Source: Callorhinchus milii (taxonomy: Eukaryota). Taken from it: a stretch of DNA of 64,000 nucleotides. The DNA is taken from positions 5,704,001 through 5,768,000 of the forward strand of contig NW_024704758.1 of NCBI RefSeq assembly GCF_018977255.1. Reading direction: 5' to 3'. Position numbers and translations under genes: made by a program. Below are positions 2,857-51,219 of the stretch, piece by piece; positions within the stretch are counted from its first letter, which is position 1, and each line of letters begins with the position of its first letter. Below the pieces are notes generated by a model. The model made no database searches, was not told the origin of the DNA, and saw nothing but the letters and a program-made list of their open reading frames with translations.

Positions 2857-2870
2857 TTAATTCCCACCGT
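2857..2870 (-). CDS. A1 terminal coding exon (DGGN-stop)
   Basis: Acceptor tttcctttgatttag, phase 1, TAA after 14 nt; homologous exons follow the last Ig exon in all three genes. Confidence 0.6.
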
Positions 2871-5800
2871 CTAAATCAAAGGAAATTTCAATATATTAAT
2901 CACCCAAACAACACATTGTAATCCACAAACAGATCTCAAACAACTTCTGTTTCACATTATGAGAGAAACTCTTCTTTTATCAACAAATCTACTGAGCAAG
3001 AGATGTGTGTGAGTATGTGTGTTGTGTTTCTGTGTGTGTATGTGTGATTATGTGTGTGTGGATGTGAAAAATTAAGCAAGTGGGTGAAAATATGTGAGTT
3101 TGATAGATTGAATAAGTGGGTGACAGAGAGGGAGAGTGATTGACATTGTGTGTGAGTATGTGAGCGAGGGAATGTGTATGAGCGATAGAGTTGATGGCTG
3201 AGAAACAGATCATGGCTGAGTGACAAAGATAATGAGTGACAAATGGAGTGAGTGAGCAAGCGAGCGACAGAGATCGTGAGTAAGTAAGAGTAGATTTATG
3301 AGTGTGTTTCCACATCGTAAGAATTGTGGAAGACAGAAAGATGCAGAAATTATAAGCTATCTCTGACATTGTGCCTGCAATGTCAATGAATAAAGCACAA
3401 CTTCACACACAGCATATCCATTGGAGAGTTTTCTCATTGATTTCCAGGATTGTATAAACCCTTAGTCTTGTCAGAATCATTAGCTGAACACTGTGGAGCG
3501 ATGCGTGAGAGATGGCAAGGACATCGCTCAGAGGGAGAACTTACCTGTAACTTGTAATGTTACAGACTCAATAAGAGGCTCTTGGAGGGCCTCATGGACA
3601 ACCTCAACCATTAATTCAGCTCCGTCATCCTTAGAGGGGTCAGCACACATCGAAACACTGCAGTTTACACTGAACATCCCATTATTCTTCCGCACATAGT
3701 GGGGCATCACAGCAGTGAAGGAGCCATCTTCCTCACAGCCCTCTGTGACATTTTCAAGGGGAACACTGGCCGTCTTAGCTTCCTGTGGTTCCCCGTCTTT
3801 CTTTGGGATCCTCCAATGAAAGACTTTCTTTTTCTCCTGCTCCCCTTTCCTCTTCACGTAGGTAACAATGGAGATGGCCCGTGGGCTGAAGCCAACAACT
3901 GCCCAGCTCAGGCTGGCCAGCTCCCCGGGCGTGATCTCAGAGGGTTTCTTGATTTCAGTGATTGTGGGAGGAACTAGAAAACAATAATGTGTGTTAAATG
4001 GACGCTATAGTGTAATTCTATAACATGCTTCAGTTTGACAAACGCTCATTCAAAATTATATCCAGAGCGACAACCCATAAATAATCACTCAATACTGCAG
4101 AGGACACCAGACAAGTGCTGGAGAAAGGGGATAAGCTGCATTTTTATATATCATCAAAAACCACAACCTTAGGCATACCTGTACTTCGTTATATCAGCAT
4201 TTGCATGTATTCATCGTACAACTACGCACTTCGGAACACATGTCAACACACATACATGAATGCAGCTCTTACCTCCTGTAACATGTAATGTCATAGTTGT
4301 AGTGAGAGGAATCTTAAGAGCCTTGTGATTCACTTCGACAATTAGCTCAGCTCTATCATCCCTGCACATATCAGCAGTTATCCAAATGCTGCAGTTTACA
4401 CTGAATGTCCCATTGTTCTTCCTCACACAGTGGGGTGTCACAGAAGTGATGGCGTCATCTTCTTCACAGCGATCCCTCACGTCTGTGAGAGCAGTGCTCC
4501 CCATCTTTGCTTCGTCATCTATTCCTCCCTTCTCTGGGATACGCCAGTGAAACAGCCTCTTCTCTTTCAGCTCCCCTTTCCTCTTCAGCAAGAAAACAAT
4601 GGAAATGGGCTTTGGAGTGAACCCGGTGACTGACCAACTCAGACGGGCCACTTCACTATGTTTAATCTCGGGACGCAAGTCAATTTCAGTCACCGTAGGA
4701 GCAACTATAAAACAGACATAAACGGGTAAGGCTGGTATTAATGAACACTCAAGAAACATGCTATAGAATTCCTAGAGACTTCAGCCAAATGGGACCCCAC
4801 AATGTGCATTCGGATAACTGCTGGCAAATGGTCTTCTCAGTTAATACTGGTTGTGAATCCAGGAGTTATCCGAATGCACACTTCTCTCTGGACACCACAC
4901 TGATAGCAGAACCTACCTCCAGGAACTTGTAATTTTATTCTCTCAATGCAAGTGTCACGGTCATTGAGAGCCTCGTGCTTAACCTGAACAGTTAATTCAG
5001 CTTCATTATCCGTGGACGCATCAGGAGTCACGGTGATGCTGCACATTACTCTGAAGGTTCCGTCTTTGTGTTTGTCTTGTTCACATTTGGGCACCTGAGC
5101 AGTGAATGAGGCATCTTTATTGCGTCCATCTGATAGGTCTTTGAGAGAAAAGGCACTTGTCTTCCCTTCAAATGTTTTCTTATCTTGAGCTTCCCAATGA
5201 AACAGTTGCCTTATTTGCTCTCCTTTCCTCTGTACACTGGAAATAATCGACATTTTCCCAGGAGTGAACCCAGTCACTGCCCATTGCAGCTCGGTTTTCT
5301 CACCGTGTTTAATTTCCTTGGGCTTGGACTCAATTGCAGTAATTTTAGGAGGAACTACAAAACAAAATGACAAACCTGATTTAAACATTCTAGTCTTTTT
5401 CTGTGTGAGACACAAATCAAATACACGGAAACAAGTGAAAAGCCTGCACATCATGGCAGAGGGCACGAGGCTGAAGCTGTTGAATAATGTTAAACTCCGT
5501 CATAAGCTCACAGTCTGTCTGAGCCTCCAGTAATCTGCAAGTGCTGCTCCCATATAGGGAGCACACAGTCATTTTGACAAATAATTAATTTAAAGTTCTA
5601 CATTTTATCCCAACTGAATACAAGAGAAATGAAGAGAAAAAGTGGGAATGAAGGACAAAGAGAGACAGGAAGAGAGGGAGAGATCTTCACACAGAGGGAG
5701 AGACATAGACAATGGGAGACACTCCCTTTTCTTTTCGATGGTGCTGTGGGATTTTTAACATTTAGCTGATATTAACATTCTAGTTATCCCAATGCACACT

Positions 5801-8800
5801 TCTCTCTGGACACAACACTGATAGCAGAACCTACCTCCAGTAACGTGTAATTTTATTCTCTCAATGCAAGTGTCACGGTTATTGAGAGCCTCGTGCTTAA
5901 CCTCAACAATTAATTCAGCTTCATTATCCGTGGACGCATCAGGAGTCACGGTGATGCTGCACATTACTCTGAAGGTTCCGCCTTTGTGTTTGTCTTGTTC
6001 ACATTTGGGCACCTGAGCAGTGAATGAGGCATCTTTATTGCGTCCATCTGATAGGTCTTTGAGAGACAAGGCACTTGTCTTCCCTTCAAATGTTTTCTTA
6101 TCTTGAGCTTCCCAATGAAACAGTTGCCTTATTTGCTCTCCATTCCTCTGTAGACTGGAAATAATCGACATTTTCCCAGGAGTGAACCCAGTCACTGCCC
6201 ATTGCAGCTCGGTTTTCTCACCATGTTTAATTTCCTTGGGCTTGGACTCAATTGCAGTAATTTTAGGAGGAACTACAAAACAAAATGACAAACCTGATAT
6301 AAACATTCTAGTCTTTTTCTGTGTGAGACACAAATCAAATACACGGAAACAAGTGAAAAACCTGCACATCATGGCAGAGGGCACCAGGCTGGAGCTGTAG
6401 AATGAAGTTAAACTCCATCTTAAGCGCACAGCCCGTCTGAGCCTCCAGTAACCTGCAAGAGCAGCCCCCAGACAGGGTGCACACTGTCATTTTGACAAAT
6501 AAATAATTTAAAGTTCTACATTTTATCCCAACTGAATACAAGCGAAAGGAAGAGAGAAAGTGGGAAAGAGAGACAAAGGGAGACAGTAAGAGAGGGAGAG
6601 ATCTTCACACAGAGGGAGAGACATAGACACTGGGAGACACTCCCTTTTCTTTTCGATGGAGCTGTGAGATTTTTAACATTTAGCTGAATAGTTAGGCGGG
6701 ACTATGGTTCAACAACCAAACCAAAAACGGCACCTCCAGCATCGCACGGCTCCCCCAACACACACTGCAGTGTCATCCTAAGAAAGAGTTTAACTGAAAG
6801 TTGTGTGTGAGAAAAACAACTTTCAGGAGACAAGAGCTAATTTCTCTCACTGGCCATTCACTGTTCACTCCCCAACCTTAGAAAGCTGACTTATCTCACA
6901 GATACTGTTTCCTTGCTTATAATGCCTATAAGCAAGAAGAGTGACCTGAAAGCATGGTTGTTTGTTACTTCGGCAATGTGCACTGAACTGGGGAACATGC
7001 TGTGAGTTGGCACATTTGCGGTTAAAGTTCAGACATTGCTGAAACAGGCTGAGTATATGTATGGGCTACTAATCACAAGATAGAGAGAGAGGAGAAAGAG
7101 AGAGAGAGGCAGGCCAAGGAAAAGAAACTGAGAAGTAAGAGACCACATGAGCTCACTCAGGGGAAAGGTAACTGATCACTGCTACTTCTGAGTTAGTCAC
7201 TACTTTATCTGGAAACTTGGATACTGTCTGGTACGTGTATAACCATTGTCTTCAGAACTTATTTAATAAAGGAAACTGGAATTTGAAATTGATTTACTTG
7301 TGGAGACAATTTGGGAGAAGCTTATTGCTCAGCAATGGTTTTTATTGGGACAAAAATATCTATATACCTAACATCCTTAAAGTGATAGATAACCACAGTG
7401 CTGATCAGGGGGTGAGCTTTGATTATATTTTCCACTTATTACCAGGAATTCTTCTGTCTCAGCTCAGACAGCAAACGTGGGCAGGAGATTCACACACAGA
7501 GACCAAATGGACAGCATAGCTACTGCCTCGGTCAGATCAGATCAGATCCCAGAACAGCACTTGAAACTTAGAGCTTCTGACCTGAGAAGCTCAACACTGT
7601 ACTGAGCAGTGACTTAAGCTGCTGGGCCATCGGGCAGCAATGGACAGCACAGCTACTGCCTCGGTCAGATCAGATCAGATCCCAGAACAGCACTTGAAAC
7701 TTAGAGCTTCTGACCTGAGAAGCTCAACACTACTGAGCAGTGACCTCAGCTGCTGGGCCAGCGGGGAGCAAATCATTACAATATCCTAAACATTGTTATA
7801 GAGCAGGTGGGACAGAGAGGACACCACACTGATAGCAGAACATACCTCCAGGAACTTGTAATTTTATTCTCTCAATGCAAGTGTCACGGTCATTGAGAGC
7901 CTCGTGCTTAACCTGAACAGTTAATTCAGCTTCATTATCCGTGGACGCATCAGGAGTCACGGTGATGCTGCACATTACTCTGAAGGTTCCGCCTTTGTGT
8001 TTGTCTTGTTCACATTCGGGCACCTGAGCAGTGAATGAGGCATCTTTATTGCGTCCATCTGATAGGTCTTTGAGAGAAAAGGCACTTGTCTTCCCTTCAA
8101 ATGTTTTCTTGTCTTGAGCTTCCCAATGAAACAGTTGCCTTATTTGCTCTCCATTCCTCTGTAGACTGGAAATAATCGACATTTTCCCAGGAGTGAACCC
8201 AGTCACTGCCCATTGCAGCTCGGTTTTCTCACCGTGTTTAATTTGCTTGGGCGTGGACTCAATTGTAGTAATTTTAGGAGGAACTACAAAACAAAATGAC
8301 AAACCTGATATAAACATTCTAGTCTTTTTCTGTGTGAGACACAAACCAAATACACGGAAACAAGTGAAAAGCCTGCACATCATGGCAGAGGGCACGAGGC
8401 TGAAGCTGTTGAATAATGTTAAACTCCGTCATAAGCTCACAGTCTGTCTGAGCCTCCAGTAATCTGCAAGTGCTGCTCCCAGATAGGGAGCACACAGTCA
8501 TTTTGACAAAAAATTAATTTAAAGTTCTATATTTTATCCCAACTGAATACAAGAGAAATGAAGAGAAAAAGTGGGAATGAGGGACAAAGAGAGACAGGAA
8601 GAGAGGGAGAGATCTTCACACAGAGGGAGAGACATAGACAATGGGAGACACTCAATTTTCTTTTCGATGGTGCTGTGGGATTTTTAACATTTAGCTAAAC
8701 AGTTAGGCGGGACTGTGGTTCAAAAACTGAACCAAAAGATAGCACCTCCAGCATTGCAGGGCTCCCCCAGGACACGTTGCAGTGCTATCCTTGGAAAGAG

Positions 8801-11800
8801 TTTAACTGAAAGTTGTGTGTGAGAAAACTGACTTTCAGGAGACAAGAGCTAATTTCCCTCACAGGCCTTTGTCCATTCCCCAACCGTAAAAAGCTGACAT
8901 ATCTCACAGATACTGTTTCCTTGCTTATAATGCCTATAAGCAATGTGAGTCACTTTAAAGCATGGTAGTTTGTAATTCTCACATTGCTTCACGCACAATT
9001 TATAATCTAAATCTTTAGCAAAGTTTCAGAAAGAGCTTCACACTATTACAGAGAACAGCAGACAATGCTGCAGACTGATGCTGAGCGGGACCATGACCAC
9101 AGAGTCTCATCACTTCTCCATCAACCTACAACAGAGCGACCCCCAAACACAACTACAACTAATCCTGCAAAATGTACACACTGTAATATTGTTACTCAGA
9201 GTACTTATGTCCTCTGCATAGTGTGTTGACAGCATTGAGGCTGTTCCTTCCCAGCTGCAAAGACGTGACCCTTGGATGAGATGTTAAACCAAAGTCTTGT
9301 TTGCCTGTTCAGTTGGGCATTAAAGATCCTGTGGCACTATTCAAAAAGAGAAGGGAGTTCTCCCGGTGTCCTGACCAACAATCGCCCTCAAAAANTTGAT
9401 TCACCGCTTTGGCTCTTTGTGAGACATTGCTGTGTGCAATTGTGCTGCCACATTTGCCTAAAAATACGCAGTCACTCCATTTCACAGTAAATCTTGTGAA
9501 GCACTTTGAGATGGTCCTCCAGACATAAGGCATTGTACCAAAATGCAAGGATTATTATTTTAGTCCTGTAGCATATTGGTTAGAGTTGACGTGTATCAAG
9601 CAACAGGACTCGGATTCAATTCTCGTACAGTGCAAAATCTAAATTTCCTTACGCCACACACCTGTTTACTTAGCAGTATGTGGTTGTTGATGGTGGATTG
9701 AGGATCACTTTCCAGCGTTAATAATCCCTCCAAAAAAATAATAATAATAATTTGGTCACTCAATCCACGATATTTGTGGGACACTGCTGTGAGTAATTGG
9801 CAACCGCATTTCAAATCTATTTCTGTGTCAAACAGAAACTGGAAACCAAATCCACAGAAACGAGTGAAAAGCCTGCACGTCATGGCAAAAGGCACCAGGC
9901 TGGAACTGTATATCTATATCAAAACGCAAGGATTATTATTATTATTATTTATATCCTCTGCACGGTGTGCATAAAGGCTGTTACTTTCCAGCTGCAAAGA
10001 TCTGATCTGCCCAATATCGTGAAGGTGAGAGATGTCCACAGTGCTGATCAGGAGATGAGCTTTGCTCATTTCATCTATTAATTACCAGGGTTTCTCATGT
10101 CTCAGCCAAGACAGTCAATGTGGGCAGACGATTCACACACAGAGACCAAATGGAGGAGCACAGCTACTGCCCCACCTCAGCTGAGTGCACCTGGGGGGAG
10201 GGGGNAAGCGTTGGTGGGCAGGGTCTCCACTGAGATGAGCTGGCTACAAGATGCTAATAATCTTTATAATCCTTGCAACTGATATAACACCTTAGCACGT
10301 CATCCAGACGTCTCATAGCGCTTCAAGGATTTTAAAGTGAAGTACATTGACTGTGTATTTGAAGGGAGAATGTGTCAGTCAATTTGCACACAGCAGTGTT
10401 CCACAAACAGCCATGAAGTAAGTGATGCATTTTATTTGGGAGATTGTTGGCCAGGACATGGGGACAAACTCCCTTCTCTTTTTGAACAGCTTGAGAACGG
10501 AATATTGGAATCCAGTCAATCCTCTGGAACAGTCTTGGAAGTTAAGTTCCCGATCCAAGTGGCTTCACAACAATCCAGAGCACTGCTGATTATACACCAG
10601 CAGCCTGGCTCGTCGACAGGCCTCAGACAGGAAGACCAGTGACTGGAATCAGGGATTCTACCCACTCAGATCTTGGTAATCCTGAAAGCCAAAGCCTTAA
10701 CAAGTAGCGCAGTCCTACCTGGAAACAGCAAGCTCTGTGCGTTTCCCTTTTTAAGCTCCAGCAGTATCCCAGTGCACACTCAGTGGTCCCCAAGCCATGC
10801 GTCTTGCCAACCTGCACCAAATACTCTCTGGTATTAGGTAAGTAGGATGCATAACTACTGTGAGCGTTCCATTCTAAACACGGGGAAGTTTCCATGCGTA
10901 ACTGGCATATATGAACCGTCTGGTTTGGATATCCTGAAGCACAGTGACGGGTTTTCTCAAATGCCAGACACCCGGCTGCCCAAAATAAACAGATCAGTGA
11001 CCAGAGCAGCACGGAGCCAGCGACATTCTGACCAGAGAGGCTCAGGGCTTCACTGAATGGGGACCTCAGTCGCTGGATCATCGGGAAGGAAACTGTTACT
11101 TTATCCTAAATATTGTCACAGAGCACGTGGTACAGAGAGGACACAATACTGATGGCTGAACCTACCTCCAGCAATGTTTATTCCGAAATGCTCAGTGAAA
11201 GGCACAGGCAATGCCTCATGATTAACCTGAACAATTAAAACAGCTCCATCATCCGTGGCCTCATGAGGAGTCATAACGATTCTGTAATTTACTCTGAAGG
11301 TTCCGTCTTTGGTGTCAGGTTCACATTTGGGCACCTCAGCAGTGAAGGCGGCATCTTTACTGTTTCTGTCTGATCGGTCCTCAAGAGGAAAGGATTTTGT
11401 TGAACTTCGAAATGCTTTCTTATTTGGAATTTCCCAGTGAAACAGTTGTCTTAGTGGCTGTTCTTTCCTCTGTAGACTGTAAACAATCGAGATGGTCCCA
11501 GGAGTAAACCCAGTCACTGCACATTGCAGCTCAGCTCTCTCACCATGTGTCATTTTCCTGGGTTTCGGAATTGTAATTTTAGGAGGAACTACAAAACAAA
11601 ATGACAAACCCGATGTAAACATTCAAATCTATTTCTGTGTCAACACAAACTGGAAACCAAATCCACAGAGACAAGTGAAAAGCCTGGACGTCATGGCAAA
11701 AGGCACCAGGCTGGAACTGTAGAATGGTGTTAAACTCCATCATAAGCGCACAGCCCGTCTGAGCCTCCAGTCACCTGCAAGAGCTGCTCCCAGACAGAGT

Positions 11801-14800
11801 GTACACTGTCTTTTGGGCAAATAAATAATTTAAAGTTCTACATTTTATCCCAACTGAATACAAGAGAAAGGAAGAGAGAAAGTGAGGGAAGAGGGACAGA
11901 GTGAGAGATGCACCACACACAGGGAGAGAGAGATAGAGGCACAGCACAGACTGCAGTGGCATCCGAGTGTAAGGAAAGAGTTTAACTGAAAGTCACATGT
12001 GGGGAAACTGACTTGAGCGGTACCAACTGCACCAGGCTGACACATAAACACAGCACCCAGTGAAACTGAAACAAAAATGAGTCCTGTATCATTTACATTC
12101 TGTTATATTGTTACTCTGAGAGTCTTTCGCCCACAAACATGTACAGTCAATTCACTTTACAGTACATTCTGTGAAGCGCTTTGAGACAATAATAATCCTT
12201 GCATTTGATATAGCGCCTTATCATGTCTTTGAGAGGTCTCAATGCCCTTCACAGAATATACTGCAAAGCAAATCGACTCTACTTTTTGTTGACAAAAATC
12301 GGCAGCTAATTGCGCACAGCAGTGACCCACAACAGTCGTGGTTTGAGTGACCAAATTATTATTGGGTTTTTTTCAGAAAGTATTATCCCCAGAAAAGCGA
12401 TCCGCCAATCGACTAACAAATAGGTTCCTGCTTATTGCAAGGTAAACAGAGGCTTGTGGAGTAAGGAAACCTGCTCAACATTTCAGCCAGGTCTCTCGCT
12501 TGAGTGGCAAGCGAACTAACCACTGAGCTACAGCACTTGGAGATGTCTCAACGATGTGATAAGGCGCAATATCAAAATGCAAGGATTATTATTATTATTT
12601 ATATCCTCTGCACGGTGTGCATAAAGGCTGTTACTTTCCAGCTGCAAAGATCTGATCTGCCCGATATCGTGAAGGTTAGAGATGTCCACAGTGCTGATCA
12701 GGAGATGAGCTTTGCTCATTTCATCTATTAATTACCATGTCTCAGCCCAGACAATCAATGTGGGCAGATGATTCACACACGGAGACCAAATGGAGGAGCA
12801 CAGCTACTGCCCCACCTCAGCTCAGTGCACCTGGGGGGAGGGGGGAAGCGTTGGTGGGCGGAGTCTCCTCTGAGATGAGCTGGCTACAAGATGCTAATAA
12901 TCTTTATAATCCTTGCAACTGATAAAACACCTTACCACATCATCCAGATGTCTCACAGTGCTTCAAAGGATTTTAAAGTGAAGTACAAAGACTGTGTATT
13001 TGAAGGAAGAATGTGTCAGCCAATTTGCACACAGCAGTGTTCCACAAACAGCCGTGAAGTAAGTGATGCATTTTATTTGGGGGATTGTTGGCCAGGACAT
13101 GGGGACAAACTCCCTTCTCTTTTTGAACAGCTTGAGAACGGAATATTGGAATCCAGTCAATCTTCTGGAACAGTCTTGGAAGTTAAGTTCCCGATCCAAG
13201 TGGCTTCACAACAATCCAGAGCACTGCTGATTATAAACCAGCAGCCTGGCTCGTCGACAGGCCTCAGACAGGAAGACCAGTGACTGGAATCAGGGATTCT
13301 ACCCACTCAGATCTTGGTAATCCTGAAAGCCAAAGCCTTAACAAGTAGTGCAGTCCTACCTGGAAACAGCAAGCTATGTGCGTTTCCCTTGTTAAGCTCC
13401 AGCAGTATCCCAGCGCACACTCAATGGTCCCCAAGCCTTGCGTCTTGCCAACCTGCACCAAATACTCTCTGGTATTAGGTAAGTAGGCTGCATAACCACT
13501 GTGAGCGTTCCATTCTAAACACGGTGAAGTTTCCATATGTAAACTATCTGGTTTGGATACCCTGAAGCACGGTGACGGGTTTTCTCAAATGCCAGACACC
13601 CGGCTGTCCAAAATAAACAGATCAGTGACCAGAGCTGCACATAGCCAGCGACTTTCTGACCAGAGAGGCTCAGGGCTTCACTGAATGGGGACCTCAGTCG
13701 CTGGATCATCGGGAAGGAAACTGTTACTTTATCCTAAATATTGTCACAGAGCACATGGTGCAGAGAGGACACAATACTGATGGCTGAACCTACCTCCAGC
13801 AATGTTTATTCCGAAATGCTCAGTGAAAGGCACTGGCAATGCCTCATGATTAACCTGAACAATTAAAACAGCTCCATCATCCGTGGCCTCATGAGGAGTC
13901 ATAACGATTCTGTAATTTACTCTGAAGGTTCCGTCTTTGGTGTCAGGTTCACATTTGGGCACCTCAGCAGTGATGGCGGCATCTTTATTGTTTCTATCTG
14001 ATTTGTCTTCAAGATGAAAGGATTTTGTTGAACTTCGAAATGCTTTCTTATTTGGAATTTCCCAGTGAAACAGTTGTCTTAGTGGCTGTTCTTTCCTCTG
14101 TAGACTGGAAACAATCGATATCGTCCCAGGAGTGAACCCAGTCACTGCACATTGCAGCTCAGCTCTCTCACCATGTGTCATTTTCCTGGGTTTCGGAATT
14201 GTAATTTTAGGAGGAACTACAAAACAAAATGACAAACCCGATGTAAACATTCAAATCTATTTCTGTGTCAAACACAAACTGGAAACCAAATCCACAGAAA
14301 CCAGTGAAAAGCCTGGACGTCATGGCAGAGGGCCCCAGGCTGGAGCTTTAGAATGATGTTAAACTCCATCATAAGCGCACAGCCCGTCTGAGCCTCCAGT
14401 AACCTGCAAGAGCTGCTCCCGCACAGGGTGCACTGTCCTTTCGACAAATAAATAATTTAAAGTTCTCCATTTTATCCCAACTGAATACAAGAGAAAGGAA
14501 GAGAGAAAGTGAGGGAAGAGGGACATAGAGTGATGCAAAACACAGGGAGTGAAAGATTGAGGCCCAGTACAGACTGCAGTGGCATCCTAGTGTAAGGAAA
14601 GAGTTTAACTGAAAGTTATGTGTGAGGAAAACGACTTTCAGGAGACATGAGCTAATTTATCTCACAGATGTTGATTTTCTTCACTCCCTGACCTTAAAAA
14701 GCTGACTTATCTTCAATGACCCTCCTCTTTGACCATGTTTTGAATCACCTTGCTTCTCCCGCCTGCCCTCTACCCTCCCCAATCCTGACCCCCAGCTCAG

Positions 14801-17800
14801 GTCCGAAACACTGACTGTCCAGCGCCTTGGGAAGTCCTCCCGACGTGAAAGGCGCTATGCAAATATAATTATGTTGTTGTTGTTATCACACAGATACTGT
14901 TTCTTGATACATCTACAGCCTATGAGCAAGATCAAGTGAACTTAAGGCATGGTTGTTTGTAACTTCTGCAATGTGCACTGGACCTGGGAACATGCTGTGA
15001 TTTGGCACGTTTGGGGTTAAAGTTGAGTCATTGCAGAAACATGCTGTGTATAAGTATGAGCTGCTAACACAAGAGTCACAGAGAGAGCGAGCGAGCGATG
15101 AAGGAAAAGAAACTGAGAAGAGACTGCCTGAGCTCTCCCAGGGAAAGGGTAACTGATCACTGCTACTTCTCCTGAATTAGTTACTGCCTTATCTAGAAAC
15201 TTAGATACTGTCTAGTATGTGTATAACCACTGACTTAAGAACTTCTGTAATAATTTTATCCCAACTGAATACAAGAGAAAGGAAGAGAGAAAGTGGCAAA
15301 GTAAGAGAGAGAGAGAGAGAGATGCACACACAGAGGGAGAGAGAGGTAGAGGACAAAACATTGGGAGAAATTCCCTTCTCTTTTAATGCTTTGGGAATTT
15401 TAACATTTAGCTGAACACCAAGACGGGATCATGGTTTAACATCTCAACTGAAAGACTCCAGCATTGTAGGGCTCCCCCAGCTCACACTGCAGCGTCATCC
15501 GAGATTGTAATAAAGGAAATTATTATTTGAAATTGAAACCATTGTCGACAACCAAATTCTTTATAAGATATTATCAACTCATTTCCTTATTACAAATCCC
15601 TACACTAGACTGTAAGTTCAGGTCCTGATGTGAACTCACAACTTTCTGGACAAGAGATAACAGTGCATATATAATAGTTTCAAATATTATATTTTAATAT
15701 TATGTATTTGTCAGAAATCACCAGATTATTTCTAATCTACAAAATAATAAATCCCCTTTGACCATGTGATTGTGGAGCCCTGAATAAAGCCTCCCTTCAC
15801 AAACAGCTTCAACTCTCCCTCTGGAGATTAACTGTTCATTTCAAACTCTCCTCGTTGGTAAAATCATTTGCTTCACCTGAATATTTCTACAGTTATGTGT
15901 GAGGGAGAGAAAGAGGAGACCAGACAGAGCAGCACTTACCCCCTTTAACGTGTAATGTTCCAATTTTAGCTTCCTTCAGAGATCCCTTCAGAGCCTCGTG
16001 TTTAATTTGAACAATCAACTCAGTGCCATCATCCCTGGATACATCAGCACACATGGTAACGTCGCACCTCACACCGAAAGTCCCAGTTGTTCTCTGTGTA
16101 ATCACCGCCATCGAGGGAGTGATGGAGACATCCTGTGTGAGAGAGGTAACTGGAATGCCTACTGGCTTGTTTCCTGCAGGTTGTTCTTTCTCTATCGTCT
16201 GCCAATAAAACAGTTTCTCTGGTGTCCGCTCCCCTCCTCTCTTCAGTAATACAGCAATTACAATGGGCCGTGGATTGAACCCAGACACTGACCAACTCAG
16301 AGTGGAGCAATCACCATGTGTCATGTCAATGGGCAGATGGATATCAGTAATTGTGGGAGGAGCTATAAAACAAACACAAGCAGCAGATAAAGATTAAATC
16401 CAGTTCCAGGACACACCGCACTGCCTCACACACACTTTACAATGTAAACCTGCAGCAACACTTCAGAGTTACACAATATTACAACAATAGCAACTTCCAT
16501 TTGCACAGCAGCCTTCGTGCAGTGTAGTGTCTTGGAGCGTTTTTGAGTGCTTAACAATAGCGTAGTTTGACACTGAGGTGGGGAGAGAGGGAAGGTGATG
16601 GAAGGCAGCGTCAGAGAGTAAAACTCTTCAGGTATGATCTGAAGGGGGATAGAGGGAGGCAATGTGGAGGGTTGAGGTAGGGAGATCCAGAGGTTCAGGG
16701 TATTGTTGCTGAATGCCAGGCTGCCGATGGTTTCATACAGGGGGTCAAGGGAAATGTAGACGACCTGAGCAAATGACGGCAGCGGGTTGAGGAGTGGATG
16801 TGAGCAGGTTGGAGAGGTAGAGAGGCGCTCTGGCAAGAACAACAGGATTACAACAAGATTACATTTGTATGGCGCCTTTCAAGTCGGGAGGACGTCCCAA
16901 GACATCCCAAGGCGTCCCAAGAAGTGATTTGTAGGCAAGTGTGAGGATTTCAAAATAGATTTGTTTAAGTTACTCAAGTCAGATAACGTGTCAGAGTGAT
17001 TTACAGTGATGGGTTCGTACACTGAGCATGGGTACAGGGGGGAGGGGGAAGCGACCATAGGTATGGTCGCCTATGTGACAATACATCACTGTCACAACAA
17101 AAATAACCATTGGTTCACAACTGATTGCAGGATAGAGGGACACATACAGTCACACGCCTGTACTGCAACTCACAGATATAAGTGCCACATAGAGAGAGGA
17201 GACCACACAGAGATAGAACTTACCTGCAACATATAATGTTACACATCCAGTGAGAGGATTCTCCAGAGCCGTATGTTTAACTATAACAATGAATTCAGCA
17301 CCATTATCCCTGGATACATCAGCACACATGGTAGCGCTGCAATTCACACTGAAAGTCCCTGTATCTGTCTGTTTTATCTTTGCCACCTCAGCAGTGAAGG
17401 AGTTAATCAGTGTAATCTCCTTAACACTGGGGGTAATATCTGATGGGATTGTCTGCTTTTCTTTCTCTGGGATCTGCCAATGAAAGAGTTCCTTTGCTTC
17501 CTGATCCACTTTCCTCTTCACCAATACAGCAATTTCAATGGCCTGTGGATTGAAGCCATTAACCTCCCACGTCAGAGCCACCTTGTCACCGTGCACAATA
17601 CCAGTGGGCATCTTGATTTCAGTCATTGTGGGAGGAACTGTAAAACACAAGCAGCAGGTCAACATTATACTGTAATTCTGTAACAAGCCGCACTGTGTCC
17701 AGCTACAGATCATAAAATCAATCCAGGGGCTCACACTGAGGTCTCACATTGAGCCCCTGGATTCCGCTTGGTCTTCAATATCAGGCTGGGCGTCAGGAGC

Positions 17801-23616: not shown

Positions 23617-24250
23617 TTTCCCAATTTTCTTGGCTGCGCATCTGACTTCGCTCACTGTGTACAAGTTGACACGACTTCTCCTGGAGACACACTCCCAATT
23701 GGGCACTGGGCGGCAGTTGGGGAAGTGAGACCCCTTCTCTCAGACACAGTGGCGCTTCACAAGATTGGGCTCAGATAACTGAGGCTCTCGGATGTTCCCA
23801 ATGTTACTGCTCCAGTTACTGCACTGGACCTTAATATGACACATCACACACCAGGCAATCCGCACGGGCTGCGGAGAGTCGCGGGTCACTGAGTTAAAGA
23901 CCCCACCGCCAGCACTCAGCCGGACATTGCTTCACATATAAAGTGCTGCAGAAACCCGCACCGCTCCCGACAGCGCCGCTCAGGAGCGCAACGGGGAATC
24001 GATCTCTCGCTCAGCGGCGGATCAGCGTCACTGACGTTTGCGCCTTTTCTGTACCTGATCCCGCAATGGAAACCCAGAGGATCAGGAGGAGGGTCGTCCC
24101 CTCGGAAGCTCCACCGGGTGCGGACATCGTGGAGGGGTTTGTGACCCCCAACGCGGTCTCTCTCCTCCTTCCAACGGCAGCGACTGAGCCGCACTTTCAT
24201 TTTCGTTCTGTCTCGTGATTTCTCGGAAATGGGTTATGTTCTCAGCGCTG
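23000..24250. promoter_or_regulatory. CpG island / probable A1 promoter (copy at ~50600-52050)
   Basis: GC- and CpG-rich, spans the putative leader exon. Confidence 0.6.
23550..23616 (-). CDS. A1 putative leader exon (MAYYEFLRTRSNLHFYCALHGE)
   Basis: Good-context ATG (gggaaaATGG); 67 nt to a phase-1 donor G|GTGGGG followed by intronic G-runs; phase matches the V exon. The peptide is only weakly hydrophobic. Confidence 0.4.
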
Positions 24251-27120: not shown

Positions 27121-27134
27121 TTAATTCCCACCGT
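27121..27134 (-). CDS. B terminal coding exon (DGGN-stop)
   Basis: Acceptor tttcctttggtttag, same coding sequence as 2857-2870. Confidence 0.6.
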
Positions 27135-35199: not shown

Positions 35200-35523
35200 A
35201 AATAATAATATAGTAATAATCCTTGCATTTGATATAGCGCTTTTCACGTCGGGAGGACGTCCCAAAGCGCTTCACAGAACACACTGTAAAGTGAATTGAC
35301 TGTATATTAGTGGGCGAACGCAGCAGCCAATTGCGCACAGCAATGTCCCACAAACAGTCGTAGATTGAAAATGACCAATTTAATTATTGTTTTTGTTTTT
35401 TGGAGGGATTATTATTAGGCGTGTGGAGTAAGGAAACTTGCCCAAGGTTTCGCCCTCTGCCTGGAATTGAACTCAGGTCCTTCGCTTGCAACGCGAGTAC
35501 TCTAACCACTGAGCTACAGGACT
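35200..35523 (-). mobile_element. Full-length tRNA-derived SINE with L2-type tail
   Basis: Head AGTCCTGTAGCTCAGTGGTTAGAG (A box) ... GAGTTCAATTCC (B box), central domain, tail ...GCGCTATATCAAATGCAAGGATTATT. Confidence 0.85.
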
Positions 35524-37149: not shown

Positions 37150-40100
37150 CTAAACCAAAGGAAATTTCAATAGATTAATCACAAAAACAGCACATTTCAG
37201 TCCAACAAACACCTCATCATAACTTGTAAGTATTAAAAAAAAAGTTTGCTTCATTTAACAAAGTGACTGTGGAGAACTGGAAGACAGCAAGTAGGATAGG
37301 TAGTTACGTGGACAAGGATTGTAGCTCTGAGCAGATGGTGAGGCCTCTTCATTTGACTCCCACTGTGTTGTGTTTGGCGAGATGCTGATTCACCTGTGGA
37401 GACAAATTTCAGAGAAAGTTATTGCTCAGAAAGGGTTATTATTGGGACAAACATATTTATATACTTAACATCCATGAAGTGAATTATACCCATGGTGCTG
37501 ATCGGGAGGTGAGCTTTGTTTATATTCTTTATTAATTACCAGGGTTTCTCATGTCTCAGTCCAGACAGTTCATACACACAGGGCCCCAGAGACCAAATGG
37601 AGCAGCACAGCTACTGCCCCCAGGTCAGCTCAGATCATCTCAGACCAGAACTCGAACCTAAGATCTTCTGACCTGAGAAGCTCAACACTGTTCTGAGCAG
37701 TGACTTCAGCTGCTGGGCCATCGGGGAGCAAATCATTACAATATCCTAAACATTGTCACAGAGCACGAGAGACAGAGAGGACACCTACCTCCCGTAACGT
37801 GTAATTTTAACTTCTCAATGAGAGGTTCACAAACACCAAGAGCCTCGTGCTGAACCTGAACAGTTAATTCAGCTTCATTATGCCTGGACACGTCAGGAGT
37901 CACGGTGATGCTGCACTTTACTCTGAAGGTTCCGTCTTTGTCTTTTTCACATTTGGGCACCTGAGCAGCGAACGAGGCATCTTTATTGCGTCCATCTGAT
38001 AGGTGTTTGAGAGAAAAGGCACTTCCCTTCCCTTCAAATGTTTTCTTATCTTGAGCTTCCCAATGAAACAGTTGCCTAATTTGCTCTCCATTCCTCTGTA
38101 GACTGGAAATAATCGACATTTTCCCAGGAGTGAACCCAGTCACTGCCCATTGCAGCTCGGTTTTCTCACCGTGTTTAATTTCCTTGGGCTTGGACTCAAT
38201 TGTAGTAATTTTAGGAGGAACTACAAAACAAAATGACAAACCTGATGTAAACATTCTAGTCTTTTTCTGCGTGAGACACAAACCAAATACACGGAAACAA
38301 GTGAAAAGCCTGGACATCGTGACAAGAGAAAGGAAGAGAAAAAGTGGGAAAGAGGGACAAAGAGAGACAGGAAGAGAGGGAGAGATCTTCACACAGAGGG
38401 AGAGACATAGACAATGGGAGACACTCCCTTTTCTTTTCGATGGTGCTGTGGGATTTTTAACATTTAGCTAAACAGTTAGGCGGGACTGTGGTTCAACAAC
38501 TGAACCAAAAGATGGCACCTCCAGCATTGCAGGGCTCCCCCAGGACACACTGCAGTGCTATCCTTGGAAAGAGTTTAACTGAAAGTTGTGTGTGAGAAAA
38601 CTGACTTTCAGGAGACAAGAGCTAATTTCCCTCACAAGCCTTTGTCCATTCCCCAACCGTAAAAAGCTGACATATCTCACAGATACTGTTTCCTTGCTTA
38701 TAATGCCTATAAGCAATGTGAGTGACCTTAAAGCATGGTTGTTTGTAACTCTCACATTGCTTCACACACAATTTATAATCTAAGTCTTCAGCAAAGCTTC
38801 AGAAACAGCTTCACACTATTAGAGAGAACAGCAGACAATGCTGCCGGCTGATGCTGAGCGGGACCATGACCACAGAGTCTCATCATTTCTCCATCAACCT
38901 ACAACAGAGCTACACCCAAACACAACTACAACCTCATCCTGTAAAATGTACACACTGTAATATTGTTACTCAGAGTACTTATATCCTCTGCACAGTGTGT
39001 TGACAGTATTGAGGCTGTTCCTTCCCAGCTGCAAAGTGCTACCACTGCTCCAGGCTGACATACAAATGGAGCAGCACAGCCACTGCCCCAGGTCAGCTCA
39101 GATCAACTCCCTGCCAACCGCACTCAAACCTTAGAGCTTTTGGCCTGAGAGGCTCAACACTGTACTGAGCAGTGACCTCAGCTGCTGGGCCATCGGGGAG
39201 CAAATCGTTACAATATCCTGAACATTGTCACAGAGCACGAGGGACAGAGAGGACACCACACTGATAGCAGAACCTACCTGGAATAATGTGCAATATTACA
39301 CTCTTCACGATAGAGGCATCAAGAGCCTCATGATGAACTTCAACAGTTAATTCAGCTCCATCATGCAAGTTTATATCAGGAATCACATTGATGATGCAAT
39401 TTACTCTGAAACTCCCATCTCCAATAGGTTCACATTTTTGCTCCTCAGCAGTGAAGGAGACAACTTGATTGTCTCTATCCGATCGGTTCTGGAGAGGAAC
39501 ATTTCTTCCTTTAAACTCTTGAAATGTTTCCTTTTTTGGAATTTCCCAGTGAAACAGTCGCACTTTTTGCTGTTGCTCTTTCCTCCTTAGACTAAAAACG
39601 ATGGCCATTGCTCCAGGAGTGAAACGAGTCACTTGACATTGCAGTGTGTCTTTCACACCATGCATAATTGGCTTGGGTAGGAAGGGTCCATTAAGTTCAG
39701 GAGGAACTGTAAAACAGAAACATGATATAAACATTGCAGCATTGCACTGGAGCGTCAGCGGGACTTGAACCCAAAACCTTCTGACACAGAGACAAGAGCG
39801 GTACCAACTGCACCAGGCTGACACATAAACACAGCACCCAGTGGAACTGAAACAAAAATGAGTCCTGTGTCATTTACATTCTGTTATATTGTTACTCTGA
39901 GTCTTTCGCCCACAAACATGTACAGTCAATTCACTTTACAGTACATTCTGTGAAGCGCTTTGAGACAATAATAATCCTTGCATTTGATATAGCGCCTTAT
40001 CATGTCTTTGAGAGGTCTCAATGCCCTTCACAGAATATGCTGCAAAGCAAATCGACTCTACTTTTTGTTGACAAAAATCGGCAGCTAATTGCGCACAGCA

Positions 40101-43102: not shown

Positions 43103-43142
<40 letters not shown>

Positions 43143-46100: not shown

Positions 46101-49100
46101 TGAGTCAACGTTTCGGGTCCATGACTCTTCGTCAGAACGAAACGTTGACTCACTTTCCTTTCTCCGTAGATGCTGCCTGACCTGCTGAGTTTTCCCAGCT
46201 CTCTCTTGTTTTTGTTTCAGATTCCAGCATCTGCAGTATTTTGTGTTTTGACCAGTATAGGTGTGATGGGGTGAATGGCCCTCTGTGCTGTAATTATAAC
46301 ATTGATCATAATTCTTGCATTTGATGTAACGCCTTATCGCACTGTTGAGACGTCTCAAAGCCCTCCACAGAATACACCGTAAAATGTATTGACTATATTT
46401 TATGGGCAAAATGCAGCAGCCAATTTCACACAGTAGTCGTGGATTGAGTGGCCAAGTTAGTATTTTTTGTTGTTGGAAGCGATTATTAACCCTGGATTTC
46501 TATGATTCTATATATTCCGAATGTTTGCACACCGACATGTAGGTGTTGCTGGGCGGGGGTGGGGGGATAGAGGTTGCACAATGCAATTCTTACCTTCAAC
46601 TTCGAATTTACAGATTTTTCGAGAGACGTTTTCAGAGTCTTGTGATGAACTTTTACAGTCATTTGAGCTCCGTCGTCCTCAGATACATCAGGACAGAATC
46701 CTATCAGACACTTTACACTGAAGGTCCCATTTTCGAGCTGAACACATCGTGGGGGCTCAGCAGTGAAGGAATTCACCCTCTCACATCCATCTTTTACATC
46801 TACGAGGGGAACACCTTCTTCAATCTGACATGACACGTTTTCATCCTTTGTGATTTTCCATACAAATAACTTCAGTTTTTGTTTTCTTTTCCTCGTCAGT
46901 AATACCACAATCTCTATCTCTTTTGGTTTGAATCCAGTAACTTCCCAACTCAGATCGGCATGCTGCCCATGTATAAAGTGAGTGGGTTTGTGGATTTCAG
47001 TGATCTTGGGAGGAGCTGTGAAACGTACAAAAAGTAGCATCAAATATTCTAATTCTCTAAAGATACCGGGGTAATGATCACCACATTTATAACAAGAATT
47101 TGCCCTTATATACCACCTTGCCAACATTGATACTTTCTCAAAGCACTTTACAGGAACTTTACAGTGTCCATCACTGAGCAAAGGGGCAAGAGAAAGCAGG
47201 GGAATGGTGACAGTGACCAAAAGCACAATCAAGCAGGTAAGTTTCTAGAAGGGATTTGGGTAAGCATTCCAGAGAGCGGAGGCCTAGACACAGCCTTTCG
47301 CTATGTCATTAGCACAATATCTGTTTCAGTTGATCATTGTGTCGGCTGATAGTTCTCTGTTGATAGAAAATGTGCACAAGAGCATTTAATGTTCAATAAT
47401 TCACCGCCACATTTGCCATTGTACTTTAGGACTGTGAAGATCCTTACCTTGAGTCCATTTCTTCCAAAAGCAAAATGCCGCTACAGCAAGGAGCACAATC
47501 ACCAGCAGGCCAACGACACCTCCAATAACAGCTCCAGGCCCATTTCCTGCAGGTTCCTGTGGTTTCTTAACTACCACAGTCAGCTCTGCCTCCAGTGTAA
47601 AATTATCACTGAATGCTCTGTGCTTCACCACACATCTGTACCGATTACCATCGTCGTCCAGGGTTGGTCTGATATTCAACTTGCTGGAAACACTGAATGT
47701 TCTGTCACTGTTGTTAACTACAATTTGTGTGATGATTCCTGTTGTAATCTCCGTCTCCACACCACGCGATACCTTGACCCAGCTGATCCCGTGAGTCTTT
47801 GGGTAAAATCTATTAACATCACATGTCAAAGCACCTTCCGAACCATTGTTGATTGTGAAGTGACGTTCAGACAAGGTAACCTTTGGCTTAGCTGTAGAGA
47901 TCACAAAATTGCCCTCTATTAATATTCTCTTTGAAGCAGCATTTTTATCTTCTACAAACAACATACACACCACTGACAACTCGTATTTACTCCAGCCTCA
48001 GCAACAGGAAGCTGGGAATTCCACCTTGTCTTTCGAAATACCTGAGTGGAATCTGGAGGACAATATCATGGAATAATATTATAACAATCCTTGCATTCGA
48101 TAGAGCACCTCACCATGTTATTGAGATGCCTCATAGAATGTTACAGGCCAGAAACAGGCCAGTCACCCATCAAATCTGCATTGCTGTTTTACTTCCTATC
48201 ACCATGACCCACCTAATGACACTTTCCAGCTCACTCCCTCAATATTCCTCTTTTTCAGTGCTTGGGTTGCTACCTTGTTCAAGGGGCACTATGTAATTGC
48301 AAACTTGTTGTTTTTTAAGCACCTAATCCCCCTTTAGAAAGAATTTACAAACTCTGCCTCAAGAATGGATAATGGCAGAGAGTTCCACATTACAGCAGCT
48401 GTTGGGTAGAGCATTCTTTCTACCCTCCCCTTCAATTCACAGAATCGTGGACATTTGCATTACAGAAAGAGGCCATTCATCCCATCGAGCCTCTCTCCAG
48501 CTTTCAGTGCAAGTCATTCATTGAATGCCACTGCCCTGTCATTTCCCCTTCAAGCCTCTCATATGATCTTCTGGAAACCCACATTGGACACTGCTTTTCA
48601 TTCTTTTTATGAGTCTTACCCCCTTACTTGGCAGGCCATTCCACATCCCAACAACTCTGAGCGAACAATGTTTGCCCAAGCTCTCTTATCACTCTTCTTA
48701 TGACACTTATAACCATACCACATAGTCACTTAACTCCCCGACTCATGGAATAGCTTTGTCCTGTTTAACCTGTCAAACCCTCTCATAATTGTGTACGTCT
48801 CTAGCATTCGTCTTGTGATTATCTTAAACCTGTATCCTCTTGTAACTGGCTCACCAACCAGTGGAAATAATACGTTACTATTTACCCTATCATAACCAGG
48901 GCCAATAGAAAATTGTGGAAATATTTGCCCAAAATTGCGGGGAAATTTTGCAAAGGCTGCGGTGGGGGGGTTGATTGGTGCTATTGAGGTACATTTTACA
49001 GGCAACCTACATTTTTTCACTTCATTGATGAAAACTAAACATGAAGAAATAACACATATTAAACTGTTGCAAAAAAAATTATTGCTTTCTTTAACAAACT

Positions 49101-51219
49101 TGGGTGACCCACTCTGGCTGTGGGGCTCGAGGAGGTCACCACCTCCTGCTTCTCAAGGCCTGTCACCACAGACACACACTCACAGATACAGAGAGACACA
49201 CTCACAGAGAGACACACAGAGAGGAGAGAGAGACACAAACACACACAGAGAGGAGAGAGACACACAGACACATACTCAGACACACAGAGGAGAGAGACAC
49301 ACACAAACAATCACAACAGCAGTGCCTCGGAGACAGCAAAGTCCATTTCCCCATTCAGGCCTACACTGGTGTTACCCCCCACCCACCCACCCACCCCAAG
49401 TGGACTACCCAGTTTTTGTTAAAGAAAGCATAGTTTTTTTTGCAACAATCTAATATGTGTAGCATCCTCGAAGCACTCCGGGATGCTACCCAGTGTGAAG
49501 GGCGCCATTTAAATGCAAGTTGTTTTTGTTGTTATTCCTTCATATTTATTTTTTATCAATAAAGTCTTGAGAGATGTCTTAGAGGGAAAATATAGAAAAC
49601 ATTTCAAAATGCGATTGAAAAAATAAAGCCAGAACTACTTTATGATGTATCAAGATGGCAGAACAAGAGGATATAGATTTAACAACAACAATTTGCCTTT
49701 TTGTATAATATAACGCCCTTCACGCAGGCTAGCGACCCCGAGCACTTCAAGGTGCTTGAGTCCGACAACGAGTTGCAAAAGGTAATTTCAGGACAGACGT
49801 CAGAAAGTATTTCTTTATCTAACGGCTGATTAATGACTGGAACAGGTTGCAAGGAAAGGTGTTTGAGGCCAGGACACTAGAATAGCTTGATGAATTGATG
49901 GAAGGATGGGTCTTCTGGAATGGATACGCTCAGATGGCCTGAAGAGCCACCTTCATCTGAACCAATCTTGTAAATACAGTATTACAAGCCGCACAATAAC
50001 ACACACACCCGGCGAGATGCTTCACTGTACTTACCTAACACTCTCACAGACGAACTCTTTTCTGCTTTTGATGGGGTCACATAAACAATACACTTGTACT
50101 CTCCTTCTTCCTCAATCTGCACTTTTGGGAGATGTAGCGAGGCATCGCCTCTCTTCAAGTTTTCTATTGTTACTGTTGCTCCGGATCTGAGTGCATCAAT
50201 AAACCCTCCATTAAATGAATAGACCAGTCGTTGAGTAGAGACAAATCTCCACTCAACAGCAACGAAACTAAGGTTGAGAACTGCCGGAGTGTAGCCGGTT
50301 ACCTTACAATCAAGGACAACATCTTGACCCTGAAAGACCTCCAGCTGGTCTTTAAATATTGTCATCTCCAATGCATCTGTGTAAAAACAGGAGGCATTCC
50401 AAAACATTAATGACAGTTAAGCATTTTATATGCCAGAATACCAGGTCTGAGTATCTGAGATTAGAAGCAGGTTAAAAGCCATGGGTTTGGGATTAGCTGC
50501 TGCTTCAAGAACAATGGAGAAAGGGAATCTCGTCCTCCTCATGGGTTTGGTGACAATACCAATCAGGACAATGTTAAACAACATGCTGGTGTGCACGTGC
50601 AGATAACGGCCACTTGGGCAGAGCACTGGAGCACAGCCAGTGCCTATGGAATTATACCCTGCAGGTTATCCAGAGAATGAGGGGTTGGGGCTTGTGTCAA
50701 AACTCTGCCGCCCGTGTCCTCACCCGTTTGAGACTCCGCATCCCCCATTTCCCCAGTTCTTGCATGACTCCACTGGCTGCCTGTTGCAGAACGGATCCAT
50801 TTCAAGATCCTCGCGTTCACTTTCGAATCATTTCCGACTCTGACCCCCCCCCCTCCCTACCTCTGCGATCCGCTTACACCCCACTCCATACCCACCGCCT
50901 GAGCTCAGCTGCAAGGTCTCGTCCCCTCAACTAAACCCGTGACGGCCGTGCTTTCAGCCATTACACTCCGAGCCTCCGGAATTCGCTACTTCAATCCCTT
51001 CGCTTTGCCTCATCTTTGCCCGTCTTCAAATCGCACCCGAAGACTTTCCTCATCGACCGTGCCTTCGGTCGCCTCCCCTCCCTCTCCGGGTTGCCGTGAA
51101 ACCACGCCGCTGTTTAAGTGCTCCAAGACACGACCGCCCCCCTCCCCCCCACCCTCCCCGTGAAGAGCGCAACATAAATGTAAGCTGCTGCGAGTGCGGA
51201 GAAACTCGTAATAAGCCAT
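37103..51219 (-). CDS. NCR3LG1: Gene A2: B7-H6/NCR3LG1-like receptor paralogous to A1, with 6 post-TM Ig-C1-like exons (multi-exon span)
   Basis: Leader, V, C1/TM and post-TM exons 1-4 are near-identical to A1. It has its own fifth exon, a diverged exon-7-like sixth exon and a longer terminal exon. Confidence 0.7.
37789..38220 (-). CDS. A2 post-TM Ig-like exon 6 (related to A1 exons 6-8)
   Basis: 432 nt, phase 1-1; 3' third diverged from A1 exons 6-8. Confidence 0.85.
39278..39706 (-). CDS. A2 post-TM Ig-like exon 5 (absent from A1)
   Basis: 429 nt, phase 1-1; VPPELNGP..LQCQVTRFTP..GSFRVNC..HEAL. Confidence 0.85.
41584..42006 (-). CDS. A2 post-TM Ig-like exon 4
   Basis: 423 nt, phase 1-1, paralogue of A1 exons 4 and 5. 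Confidence 0.85.
43753..44175 (-). CDS. A2 post-TM Ig-like exon 3
   Basis: 423 nt, phase 1-1, open. Confidence 0.85.
45007..45420 (-). CDS. A2 post-TM Ig-like exon 2
   Basis: 414 nt, phase 1-1, open. Confidence 0.85.
46594..47015 (-). CDS. A2 post-TM Ig-like exon 1 (422 nt, ends in phase 0)
   Basis: Same length and phase-0 donor as in A1. Confidence 0.85.
47448..47891 (-). CDS. A2 IgC1 + transmembrane exon
   Basis: 444 nt, paralogue of 19899-20342. Confidence 0.92.
50035..50376 (-). CDS. A2 IgV exon
   Basis: 342 nt; 3 nucleotide differences from the A1 V exon by manual comparison. Confidence 0.92.
51153..51219 (-). CDS. A2 putative leader exon (MAYYEFLRTRSSLHLCCALHGE)
   Basis: Same 67-nt ATG-to-phase-1-donor arrangement as in A1. 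Confidence 0.4.

Follow-up and report, generated by a model that had tools for sequence, protein, structure and literature searches.

Surface receptors of the immunoglobulin (Ig) superfamily hold their Ig domains outside the cell and short signalling motifs inside it. Human B7-H6 (NCR3LG1), an immune "kill-me" flag and the ligand of NKp30, consists of a signal peptide, an IgV domain, an IgC1 domain and a single-pass, type I transmembrane segment (TM), and its cytoplasmic tail is reportedly Gag-like. In the butyrophilins BTN3A1 and BTN2A1, one TM links a B7-type V-C ectodomain to a cytosolic beta-sandwich domain of the PRY/SPRY (B30.2) type, which is the model for how a lymphocyte ligand can be controlled from inside the cell (inside-out control). 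Tandem, disulfide-independent Ig-fold repeats are also found in the cytosol in titin, obscurin, MyBP-C and filamin, which are soluble cytoskeletal proteins with repeats of the I-set or filamin type. The multi-C1 molecules of cartilaginous fish, such as IgM and UrIg2, are encoded with one C1 domain per phase-1 exon, and their arrays have been enlarged by exon duplication (PMC12227049). Here we describe a 64,000-nucleotide (nt) stretch of the genome of the elephant shark, Callorhinchus milii (contig NW_024704758.1; hereafter the window), on the minus strand of which three genes, A, B and C, form a tandem cluster. The locus is likely to be a cluster of B7-H6 (NCR3LG1)-like genes in which a V-C1-TM unit is followed by a varying number of cytosolic, C1-derived and disulfide-less Ig modules.

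The predicted proteins resemble human B7-H6 in their signal peptide, IgV domain and IgC1 domain and would, judging by hydropathy, also be single-pass, type I membrane proteins, while the shark genes differ from it in carrying 1-10 Ig modules in the position of the tail. With the butyrophilins they would share the B7-type V-C ectodomain, the one TM and a cytosolic beta-sandwich domain, although the likeness is an analogy of how the proteins may work, the intracellular domain being PRY/SPRY there and Ig C1-like here. The layout of one C1 domain per phase-1 exon and the growth by exon duplication recall IgM and UrIg2, whose arrays, in contrast, precede the TM, are disulfide-bonded and are extracellular. 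Like the repeats of titin, obscurin, MyBP-C and filamin, the modules would be tandem Ig folds that stand in the cytosol independently of disulfides, but they are C1-set-derived, contain an acidic insert of 30-40 amino acids (aa) and are predicted to be membrane-tethered. Among surface receptors, a predicted intracellular tail that consists of 3 to 10 antibody-like domains is highly unusual.

All three genes have the exon order leader, IgV, IgC1+TM and then 10 (gene A), 3 (gene B) or 6 (gene C) post-TM exons of ~430 nt each, an arrangement that was proposed in an earlier reading of the sequence (the original prediction) and is borne out by exon anatomy, splice sites and tblastn. A tblastn search of the window with the module set recovered 19 post-TM modules together with three exons each of the IgV and IgC1+TM kinds; nothing further, and no decayed module copy, was found by it. 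The window contains no NKp30-like gene. Every module exon (414-444 nt, one domain each) is bounded by a polypyrimidine-AG acceptor and a GTAAG or GTAGG donor, and 17 of the 19 are of phase 1-1 with a length divisible by 3, the exceptions being A1 and C1, which are one base short. Positions are numbered on the forward strand of the window, and all gene features lie on the minus strand; RefSeq models were placed via locus L001 (assembly GCA_018977255.1), which matches the window base for base. The range originally given for the cluster was right at its start, where the terminal exon of gene A lies (2870-2857), but its end coordinate, 51219, misses the leader of gene C by ~730 nt.

Gene B is intact. 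Its leader exon (MEGLRVLWPPAALSLLLGCLVSPA; 32796..32868) was assigned by splice reconstruction and RefSeq mapping, its IgV exon (31717..32046) by splice reconstruction and the Pfam V-set match, and its IgC1+TM exon (30377..30820), in which the TM IVGGISVISLIVLLNLALF is followed by CCCRK, by splice sites, Pfam and hydropathy. They are followed by modules B1 (29686..30117) and B3 (27808..28236), both supported by splice sites and RefSeq identity, with module B2 (28537..28968; splice sites, structure prediction and Foldseek) between them, and by a terminal coding exon that encodes (D)GGN and a stop codon (27121..27134; splicing and RefSeq mapping). Spliced together, these exons give an unbroken frame of 717 aa that is 100% identical to RefSeq LOC121850342 (P0003), and splicing and RefSeq identity thereby uphold the 717-aa protein with a clear signal peptide and a post-TM CCCRK motif that had been read from the sequence.

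By sequence similarity, the ectodomain is closest to that of human B7-H6. Residues 1-282 of gene B match the Pfam families V-set (4e-10) and C1-set (2.9e-15), and the top three matches of the ectodomain in PDB are human NCR3LG1 chains (3.5e-24 to 6e-24), which lead the next family by seven orders; UrIg2 (5e-17) and CD276 (8e-16) follow. RefSeq names gene A 'NCR3LG1-like', and this name and the PDB E-value of 3.5e-24 agree with the B7-H6-like family originally proposed. The module profile had no match in the human B7-H6 tail, a comparison that is a lead only.

The post-TM modules, at ~140 aa per exon, are confidently predicted to be C1-set-derived Ig folds with a Trp/Val core in place of the disulfide. 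An AlphaFold2 model of module B2, built from the alignment of the 19 modules, reached a predicted local distance difference test score of 90.5 and a predicted template-modelling score of 0.85 and has a C1-set fold; its top Foldseek matches were the MHC-II beta2 domain and beta2-microglobulin, with probability 1.0 and template-modelling scores of up to 0.75 (by target length). The module profile matches C1-set chains only (such as IgM constant regions and beta2-microglobulin), the best being IgM constant domains. These structural checks support the earlier description of the downstream exons as Ig-C1-like. The module has no Pfam family of its own: the best C1-set score, 20.7 bits, lies below the gathering cutoff of 21 and is split over partial stretches, two of five modules have no C1-set match, and I-set matched one module only, with an E-value of 0.13. 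The canonical Cys pair is found in 0 of the 19 window modules, where the B-strand position is occupied by Trp in 15 and by Cys in 4 and the F-strand position by Val in at least 90%; thus, no window module can form the Ig disulfide. The module exceeds a normal C1 domain by ~45 residues because of an acidic central loop that was modelled with low confidence and is predicted to be disordered.

Kyte-Doolittle hydropathy of all window proteins and their paralogues reveals a leader and one TM (hydropathy values of 2.5-3.0), which is followed by basic residues (CCCRK or FWKKW), and in the full-length model, residues 257-272 form the one helix beside five beta domains. To place the modules in a wider set of proteins, their profile was searched against 1.84 billion representatives, which gave 346 matches; the best 149 of them were analysed, and 82 have a near-full module. 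Hydropathy detected a second hydrophobic segment neither in the window proteins nor after the module in these 82 homologues, in keeping with what had been noted from the window alone. A TM is located within 80 aa upstream of the module in 60 of the 82 and after the module in 0 of the 82. With a cleaved leader, a disulfide-bonded V-C1 unit outside and a single TM with none after it, we strongly infer from these sequence features that the post-TM modules are cytosolic, and the loss of the canonical disulfide is as expected of cytosolic domains. Splicing out of the TM was considered and rejected: the TM is encoded in the IgC1 exon, and the sole upstream phase-1 GT (GAG/GTGTCG) is weak.

The first post-TM module is common to B7-H6-type proteins from chimaera to marsupial, as judged by the domain order of the homologues analysed. 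Carriers of a TM followed by the module include the horn shark, catsharks, rays, a skate, C. milii LOC103174895, the coelacanth, lungfish and bichirs and, among tetrapods, many frogs (several named NCR3LG1-like), the lizard Pogona and the marsupial Dromiciops; the Dromiciops protein is named NCR3LG1 by NCBI, and one model from the coelacanth, lungfish and bichir group is named NR3L1. Both Cys are found in this first module in 2 of the 60 homologues, and the pair is missing in the other 58. Multi-Ig post-TM tails are also found in NCR3LG1-type models of the coelacanth, bichir, lungfish, lizard, ray and marsupial, and LOC103174895 (P0164) has V-C1-TM plus ~8 Ig domains. The expandable multi-domain array had been put forward as the new part; the expansion stands, but the array is not peculiar to this locus. 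These proteins of LOC103174895, coelacanth, bichir, lungfish, ray, Pogona and Dromiciops resemble the window genes in that V-C1-TM is followed by a disulfide-less first module, whereas their further tail domains are more canonically C1-like, many with both Cys. What is special to the window genes is that the disulfide-less module type itself is expanded. In Xenopus laevis P0094 (OCT83549.1), the V-C1-TM-module unit is followed at residues 436-661 by a Tachylectin beta-propeller (Pfam E = 6e-30), which is either a real fusion or a merged model.

Direct RNA evidence comes from the bullfrog, in which the gene spans 31 kb and two contigs of 1.7 kb from independent RNA-seq runs contain the whole 451-aa V-C1-TM-module open reading frame (ORF). 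The size of these contigs relative to the gene makes them direct mRNA evidence for the TM-module junction, here with a single module. The original prediction mentions that homologues of B7-H6 outside mammals had been noted to have one cytoplasmic IgSF domain; the ~430-aa frog proteins and the bullfrog mRNA fit this, while such an earlier note was neither confirmed nor excluded from the literature. For the multi-domain tails, the evidence consists of gene models from several pipelines and assemblies. The entry UniProt V9K7L7, which corresponds to P0164, is presumably cDNA-derived, as we take it to be from the 2014 C. milii transcriptome. Exact look-ups of P0164, P0202 and P0056 returned no RNA-derived ORFs, and P0046 is a genome model.

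Gene A begins with a leader exon that encodes MSAPGG...IAGS and ends in a phase-1 donor (24055..24127; the start of RefSeq model P0197), followed by an IgV exon (22434..22775; splice sites, tblastn and the Pfam V-set match of the homologous gene B exon) and an IgC1+TM exon (19899..20342; splice sites, hydropathy and tblastn), in which the TM VIGGVVGLLVIVLLAVAAF precedes FWKKW. Module A1 (19045..19466) is a 422-nt exon that runs from phase 1 to phase 0 as assembled and contains a short A-run at ~19060, as established by splice analysis and by P0197, which stops at 19060. Modules A2 (17224..17637), A3 (15940..16362; contained in RefSeq P0196) and A4 (13794..14216) are supported by splice sites, module comparison and tblastn, and A6 (7846..8283) by splice sites and module comparison. 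Splice sites and duplication analysis identify A5 (11166..11588) as a tandem duplicate of A4 with 96% aa identity, A7 (5835..6272) and A8 (4917..5354) as duplicates of A6, A9 (4273..4704) as 98% identical in aa sequence to B2 and A10 (3545..3973) as 96% identical to B3. The terminal coding exon (2857..2870) again encodes (D)GGN and a stop codon, as in gene B, and is the end of P0196.

Gene C consists of a leader exon (51874..51946; 24/24 identity to P0202), an IgV exon (50035..50376; splicing, tblastn and comparison with P0202), an IgC1+TM exon (47448..47891; splice sites, tblastn and comparison with P0202) and six modules. Module C1 (46594..47015; splice analysis and comparison with P0202) is also 422 nt long and has an A-run at ~46609 that is one base short, as in A1. 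Splice sites and module comparison support C2 (45007..45420), C3 (43753..44175), C4 (41584..42006) and C6 (37789..38220), the last of which is identical at 143/143 positions to the last module of the paralogue P0194, while C5 (39278..39706; splice sites and duplication analysis) is of a type missing from gene A. A short distal exon that encodes G-ESASRQTQHSG... (37358..37393) was assigned from the tail of P0194; it is unlike the DGGN exon of genes A and B, and its 3' end could lie either at a weak donor at 37357 or at a stop ~100 nt further. No counterpart of the last exon of P0194, which encodes RFK and a stop, was found for gene C. A tRNA-Leu(CAG)-like sequence detected by ARAGORN just downstream of C6 (37637-37727, minus strand) is probably an intronic tRNA-derived short interspersed element.

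The original prediction of module arrays in genes A and C holds for their exons and splice sites but not for the assembled frame, which is broken after the first module. The A-run in both A1 and C1 is GTAAATTC, while GTAAAATTC is what one would expect from the paralogues that read through and from an older copy of gene C, and the frame is lost because the run is one base shorter than the in-frame reading (...SV-KFEVE-G/gt) needs. P0194 (RefSeq LOC103173843), the older model P0007 and P0202 are all in frame at this site, and P0202, which comes from an older data set, is gene C itself, with 98-100% identity in every exon. Because of the frame loss at the short A-run, RefSeq splits gene A in two: P0197 ("NCR3LG1-like, partial", 422 aa) ends at base 19060, and P0196 joins modules A3-A10 and the DGGN exon as a separate 1139-aa gene that begins at an internal Met. 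If the A1 exon is skipped, gene A has an unbroken 1576-aa frame to the shared terminal exon. The in-frame paralogues and the older copy suggest that the break is a homopolymer assembly error, a polymorphism or a very recent lesion; we infer that it reflects a polymorphism or an error in the assembly, or else that the transcript avoids it by exon skipping. A phase-0 acceptor at 17677 (ttacag/AAT) would also rescue the frame, but its pyrimidine tract is poor, and we consider its use less probable than skipping of the exon or an error in the A-run.

Comparison of genes A and C bears on whether the distal modules are translated. In their introns, substitutions amount to 3.4% and indels to 5.1 per kb, 82% of the indels not being a multiple of 3, whereas their distal exons (1.7 kb) differ by 4.0% substitutions and only one in-frame indel of 6 nt, with zero stops, against an expectation of ~8.6 indels (Poisson P ~0.002). 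Amino acid differences between paralogues are two-fold depleted in the conserved, fold-defining columns (odds ratio 0.48, p = 0.003). The scarcity of exon indels and the depletion in fold columns suggest that the modules behave as translated, folded domains with fast-changing surfaces. The ratio of nonsynonymous to synonymous substitution rates (dN/dS) between recent paralogues is ~1 (range ~0.5-2.5, pooled ~1.1), is similar for the ectodomain and is based on too few changes to be informative.

Several observations weigh against the reading of the arrays as cytosolic receptor tails. As assembled, genes A and C, when spliced canonically, reach a stop 4 codons into the exon after the first module (...SKLK-FLPQ, 431 aa), and gene A is split in RefSeq into the 422-aa partial and the 1139-aa models. 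Large-database searches, including one with a junction-spanning query of 219 aa, found no C. milii RNA-derived ORF across the TM-to-module junction of the window genes. The dN/dS of ~1 might hint at weak or diversifying constraint at the amino acid level. The inferred cytosolic placement is based on hydropathy and Cys loss; the tail of gene B contains 1.1 N-X-S/T sequons per 100 aa; and both Cys are present in ~40% of the later post-TM domains of orthologue-type proteins, which is above expectation if disulfides are irrelevant there. None of the homologues tested is fused to a known signalling domain of the cytosol. Genes A and C might encode receptors with the first module only (431 aa, ...SKLKFLPQ and a stop), the 9 or 5 distal exons being 3' untranslated sequence, decaying or part of a separate transcript for a soluble cytosolic Ig-array protein. 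That both genes lose the frame where module 1 ends, that RefSeq has gene A as two genes and nothing over the distal exons of gene C, that dN/dS is ~1 and that single-module forms are real in frogs would all fit such receptors. They are nevertheless unlikely, as the distal exons did not accumulate indels and stops in the way that the introns did and spare fold-defining residues, P0202, P0194 and P0007 have an extra A in the run and stay in frame, gene A without A1 is an open frame of 1576 aa to the shared DGGN and stop, and the distal exons are preceded by no leader or promoter-like first exon, the RefSeq distal model opening at an internal Met.

The long arrays could also be artefacts of gene prediction, with real mRNAs carrying at most one post-TM module, since predictors can chain the exons of neighbouring genes when every Ig exon is of phase 1-1. 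The multi-module proteins are nearly all Gnomon or Ensembl models, and the direct RNA evidence is for the single-module frog protein; but tblastn finds no leader, V or TM exons between the modules, the arrays close on conserved, tiny terminal exons that are common to the genes, independent annotations of different assemblies chain the exons alike and the isoforms of the horn shark differ by whole modules, which together make such an artefact quite improbable. Very improbable, in our judgement, is an extracellular or luminal position of the post-TM Ig domains, whether because the topology is unconventional, because a second TM exon has gone unannotated or because the TM is spliced out. In its favour are the classically extracellular location of C1 domains, the ~40% of later tail domains with both canonical Cys in the orthologue-type proteins and the sequons that are present. 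Against it, the TM is part of the IgC1 exon with no good in-phase donor upstream, a later hydrophobic segment is found in 0 of the 82 homologues, the bullfrog mRNA encodes one TM, basic residues (CCCRK, FWKKW) follow the TM and the disulfide pair is missing in 19/19 window modules and in 58/60 first modules. The cytosolic, multi-module tail is the reading that we prefer.

The arrays of the cluster have changed in length. Module types are 30-58% identical to each other, so that the types are old. The order of types is 1-2-3-4-4-6-6-6-9-10 in gene A, 1-2-3-4-5-6 in gene C and 1-2-3-4-5-6-6-6 in P0194, and it is B1-9-10 in gene B and B1-B1-B1-9-10 in P0001. A segmental duplication of 4.8 kb with 98% identity (129-4902 versus 24401-29163) includes the last two modules, the DGGN exon and downstream intergenic DNA; the tail of gene A is thus of gene B type, and the cluster probably continues past the left edge of the window. 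Module orders and the segmental duplication indicate that the arrays grow and shrink by duplication and deletion of exons and segments, and with the exon duplicates they confirm the expandability that had been predicted. Compared with the gene C region at 39036-40348, which includes the C5 exon, the corresponding region of gene A (9262-9916) lacks an exon of this type and retains only the upstream intron-like sequence; single Ns occur at 9395 and 10205. Outside the window, P0001 and P0002 of C. milii LOC103174897 have an A/C-type leader that is joined to IgC1 without IgV, followed by 5 or 4 modules, and the difference of one whole module between them suggests module-skipping isoforms. In the sharks, P0008 (Heterodontus francisci) and P0011 and P0013 (catsharks) contain an acidic linker of ~30 aa before each module, and this linker-module unit is near-identical and repeated up to 8 times, with 8 modules in the horn shark, an expansion that is independent of that in the elephant shark.

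Long, low-complexity CA/GA tracts occur downstream of the last module, before the terminal exon (2957-3369 and 27221-27523), and within the intron that separates the IgV exon from the IgC1+TM exon (21398-21852 and 48935-49453); they translate as HTHT... or SLSL... and yield spurious ORFs on both strands. Short interspersed repeats recur, for instance at 3-262, 12191-12313, 15253-15352 and 35214-35357. ORFs at 62176-63300 (minus strand) resemble by eye the C-terminal part of a non-LTR retrotransposon reverse transcriptase, and neither they nor the other flanking ORFs in the window have a Pfam match.

Given the classic role of C1 domains in pairing, the fast evolution of the module surfaces and the analogy with butyrophilin B30.2, we tentatively propose that the cytosolic Ig array may serve as a modular, protein-binding and self-associating platform. 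Such a platform could couple the surface display or clustering of a natural killer (NK)-cell ligand to the state of the cell interior, a form of inside-out control in which valency would be set by how many modules there are. Conflict with pathogens inside the cell could be the reason why the module surfaces evolve fast. We hold this mechanism as a whole to be possible rather than probable. SPRY/PRY (B30.2) had no match in the window proteins or in 10 homologues, and a search of a viral structure library with the module gave generic Ig-fold matches only. More doubtful still is a broader scheme in which the ancestral B7-H6 was two-sided, with an NKp30-facing V-C1 unit outside and a cytosolic, disulfide-free Ig array that sensed or bound intracellular, stress- or pathogen-derived partners and controlled display; host-pathogen conflict would have driven the expansion of the array in chimaeras and sharks, and eutherians would have lost it with the replacement of the tail.

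The accessible literature yielded no account of a B7-H6 tail that contains Ig domains, although an earlier description is possible, and proteins of the window type stand in RefSeq as "uncharacterized". Such labels and the splitting of one gene at a probable homopolymer error are annotation problems that the present analysis flags. Natural C1-type Ig domains that fold without a disulfide would be useful for the design of intrabodies. A conserved, disulfide-less Ig module that follows the TM in up to 10 copies would, if true, be a new way to build a receptor tail and would imply an ancestral intracellular function of B7-H6 that was lost in eutherians. It would also make testable why and how NK ligands were displayed on the stressed cells of early vertebrates.

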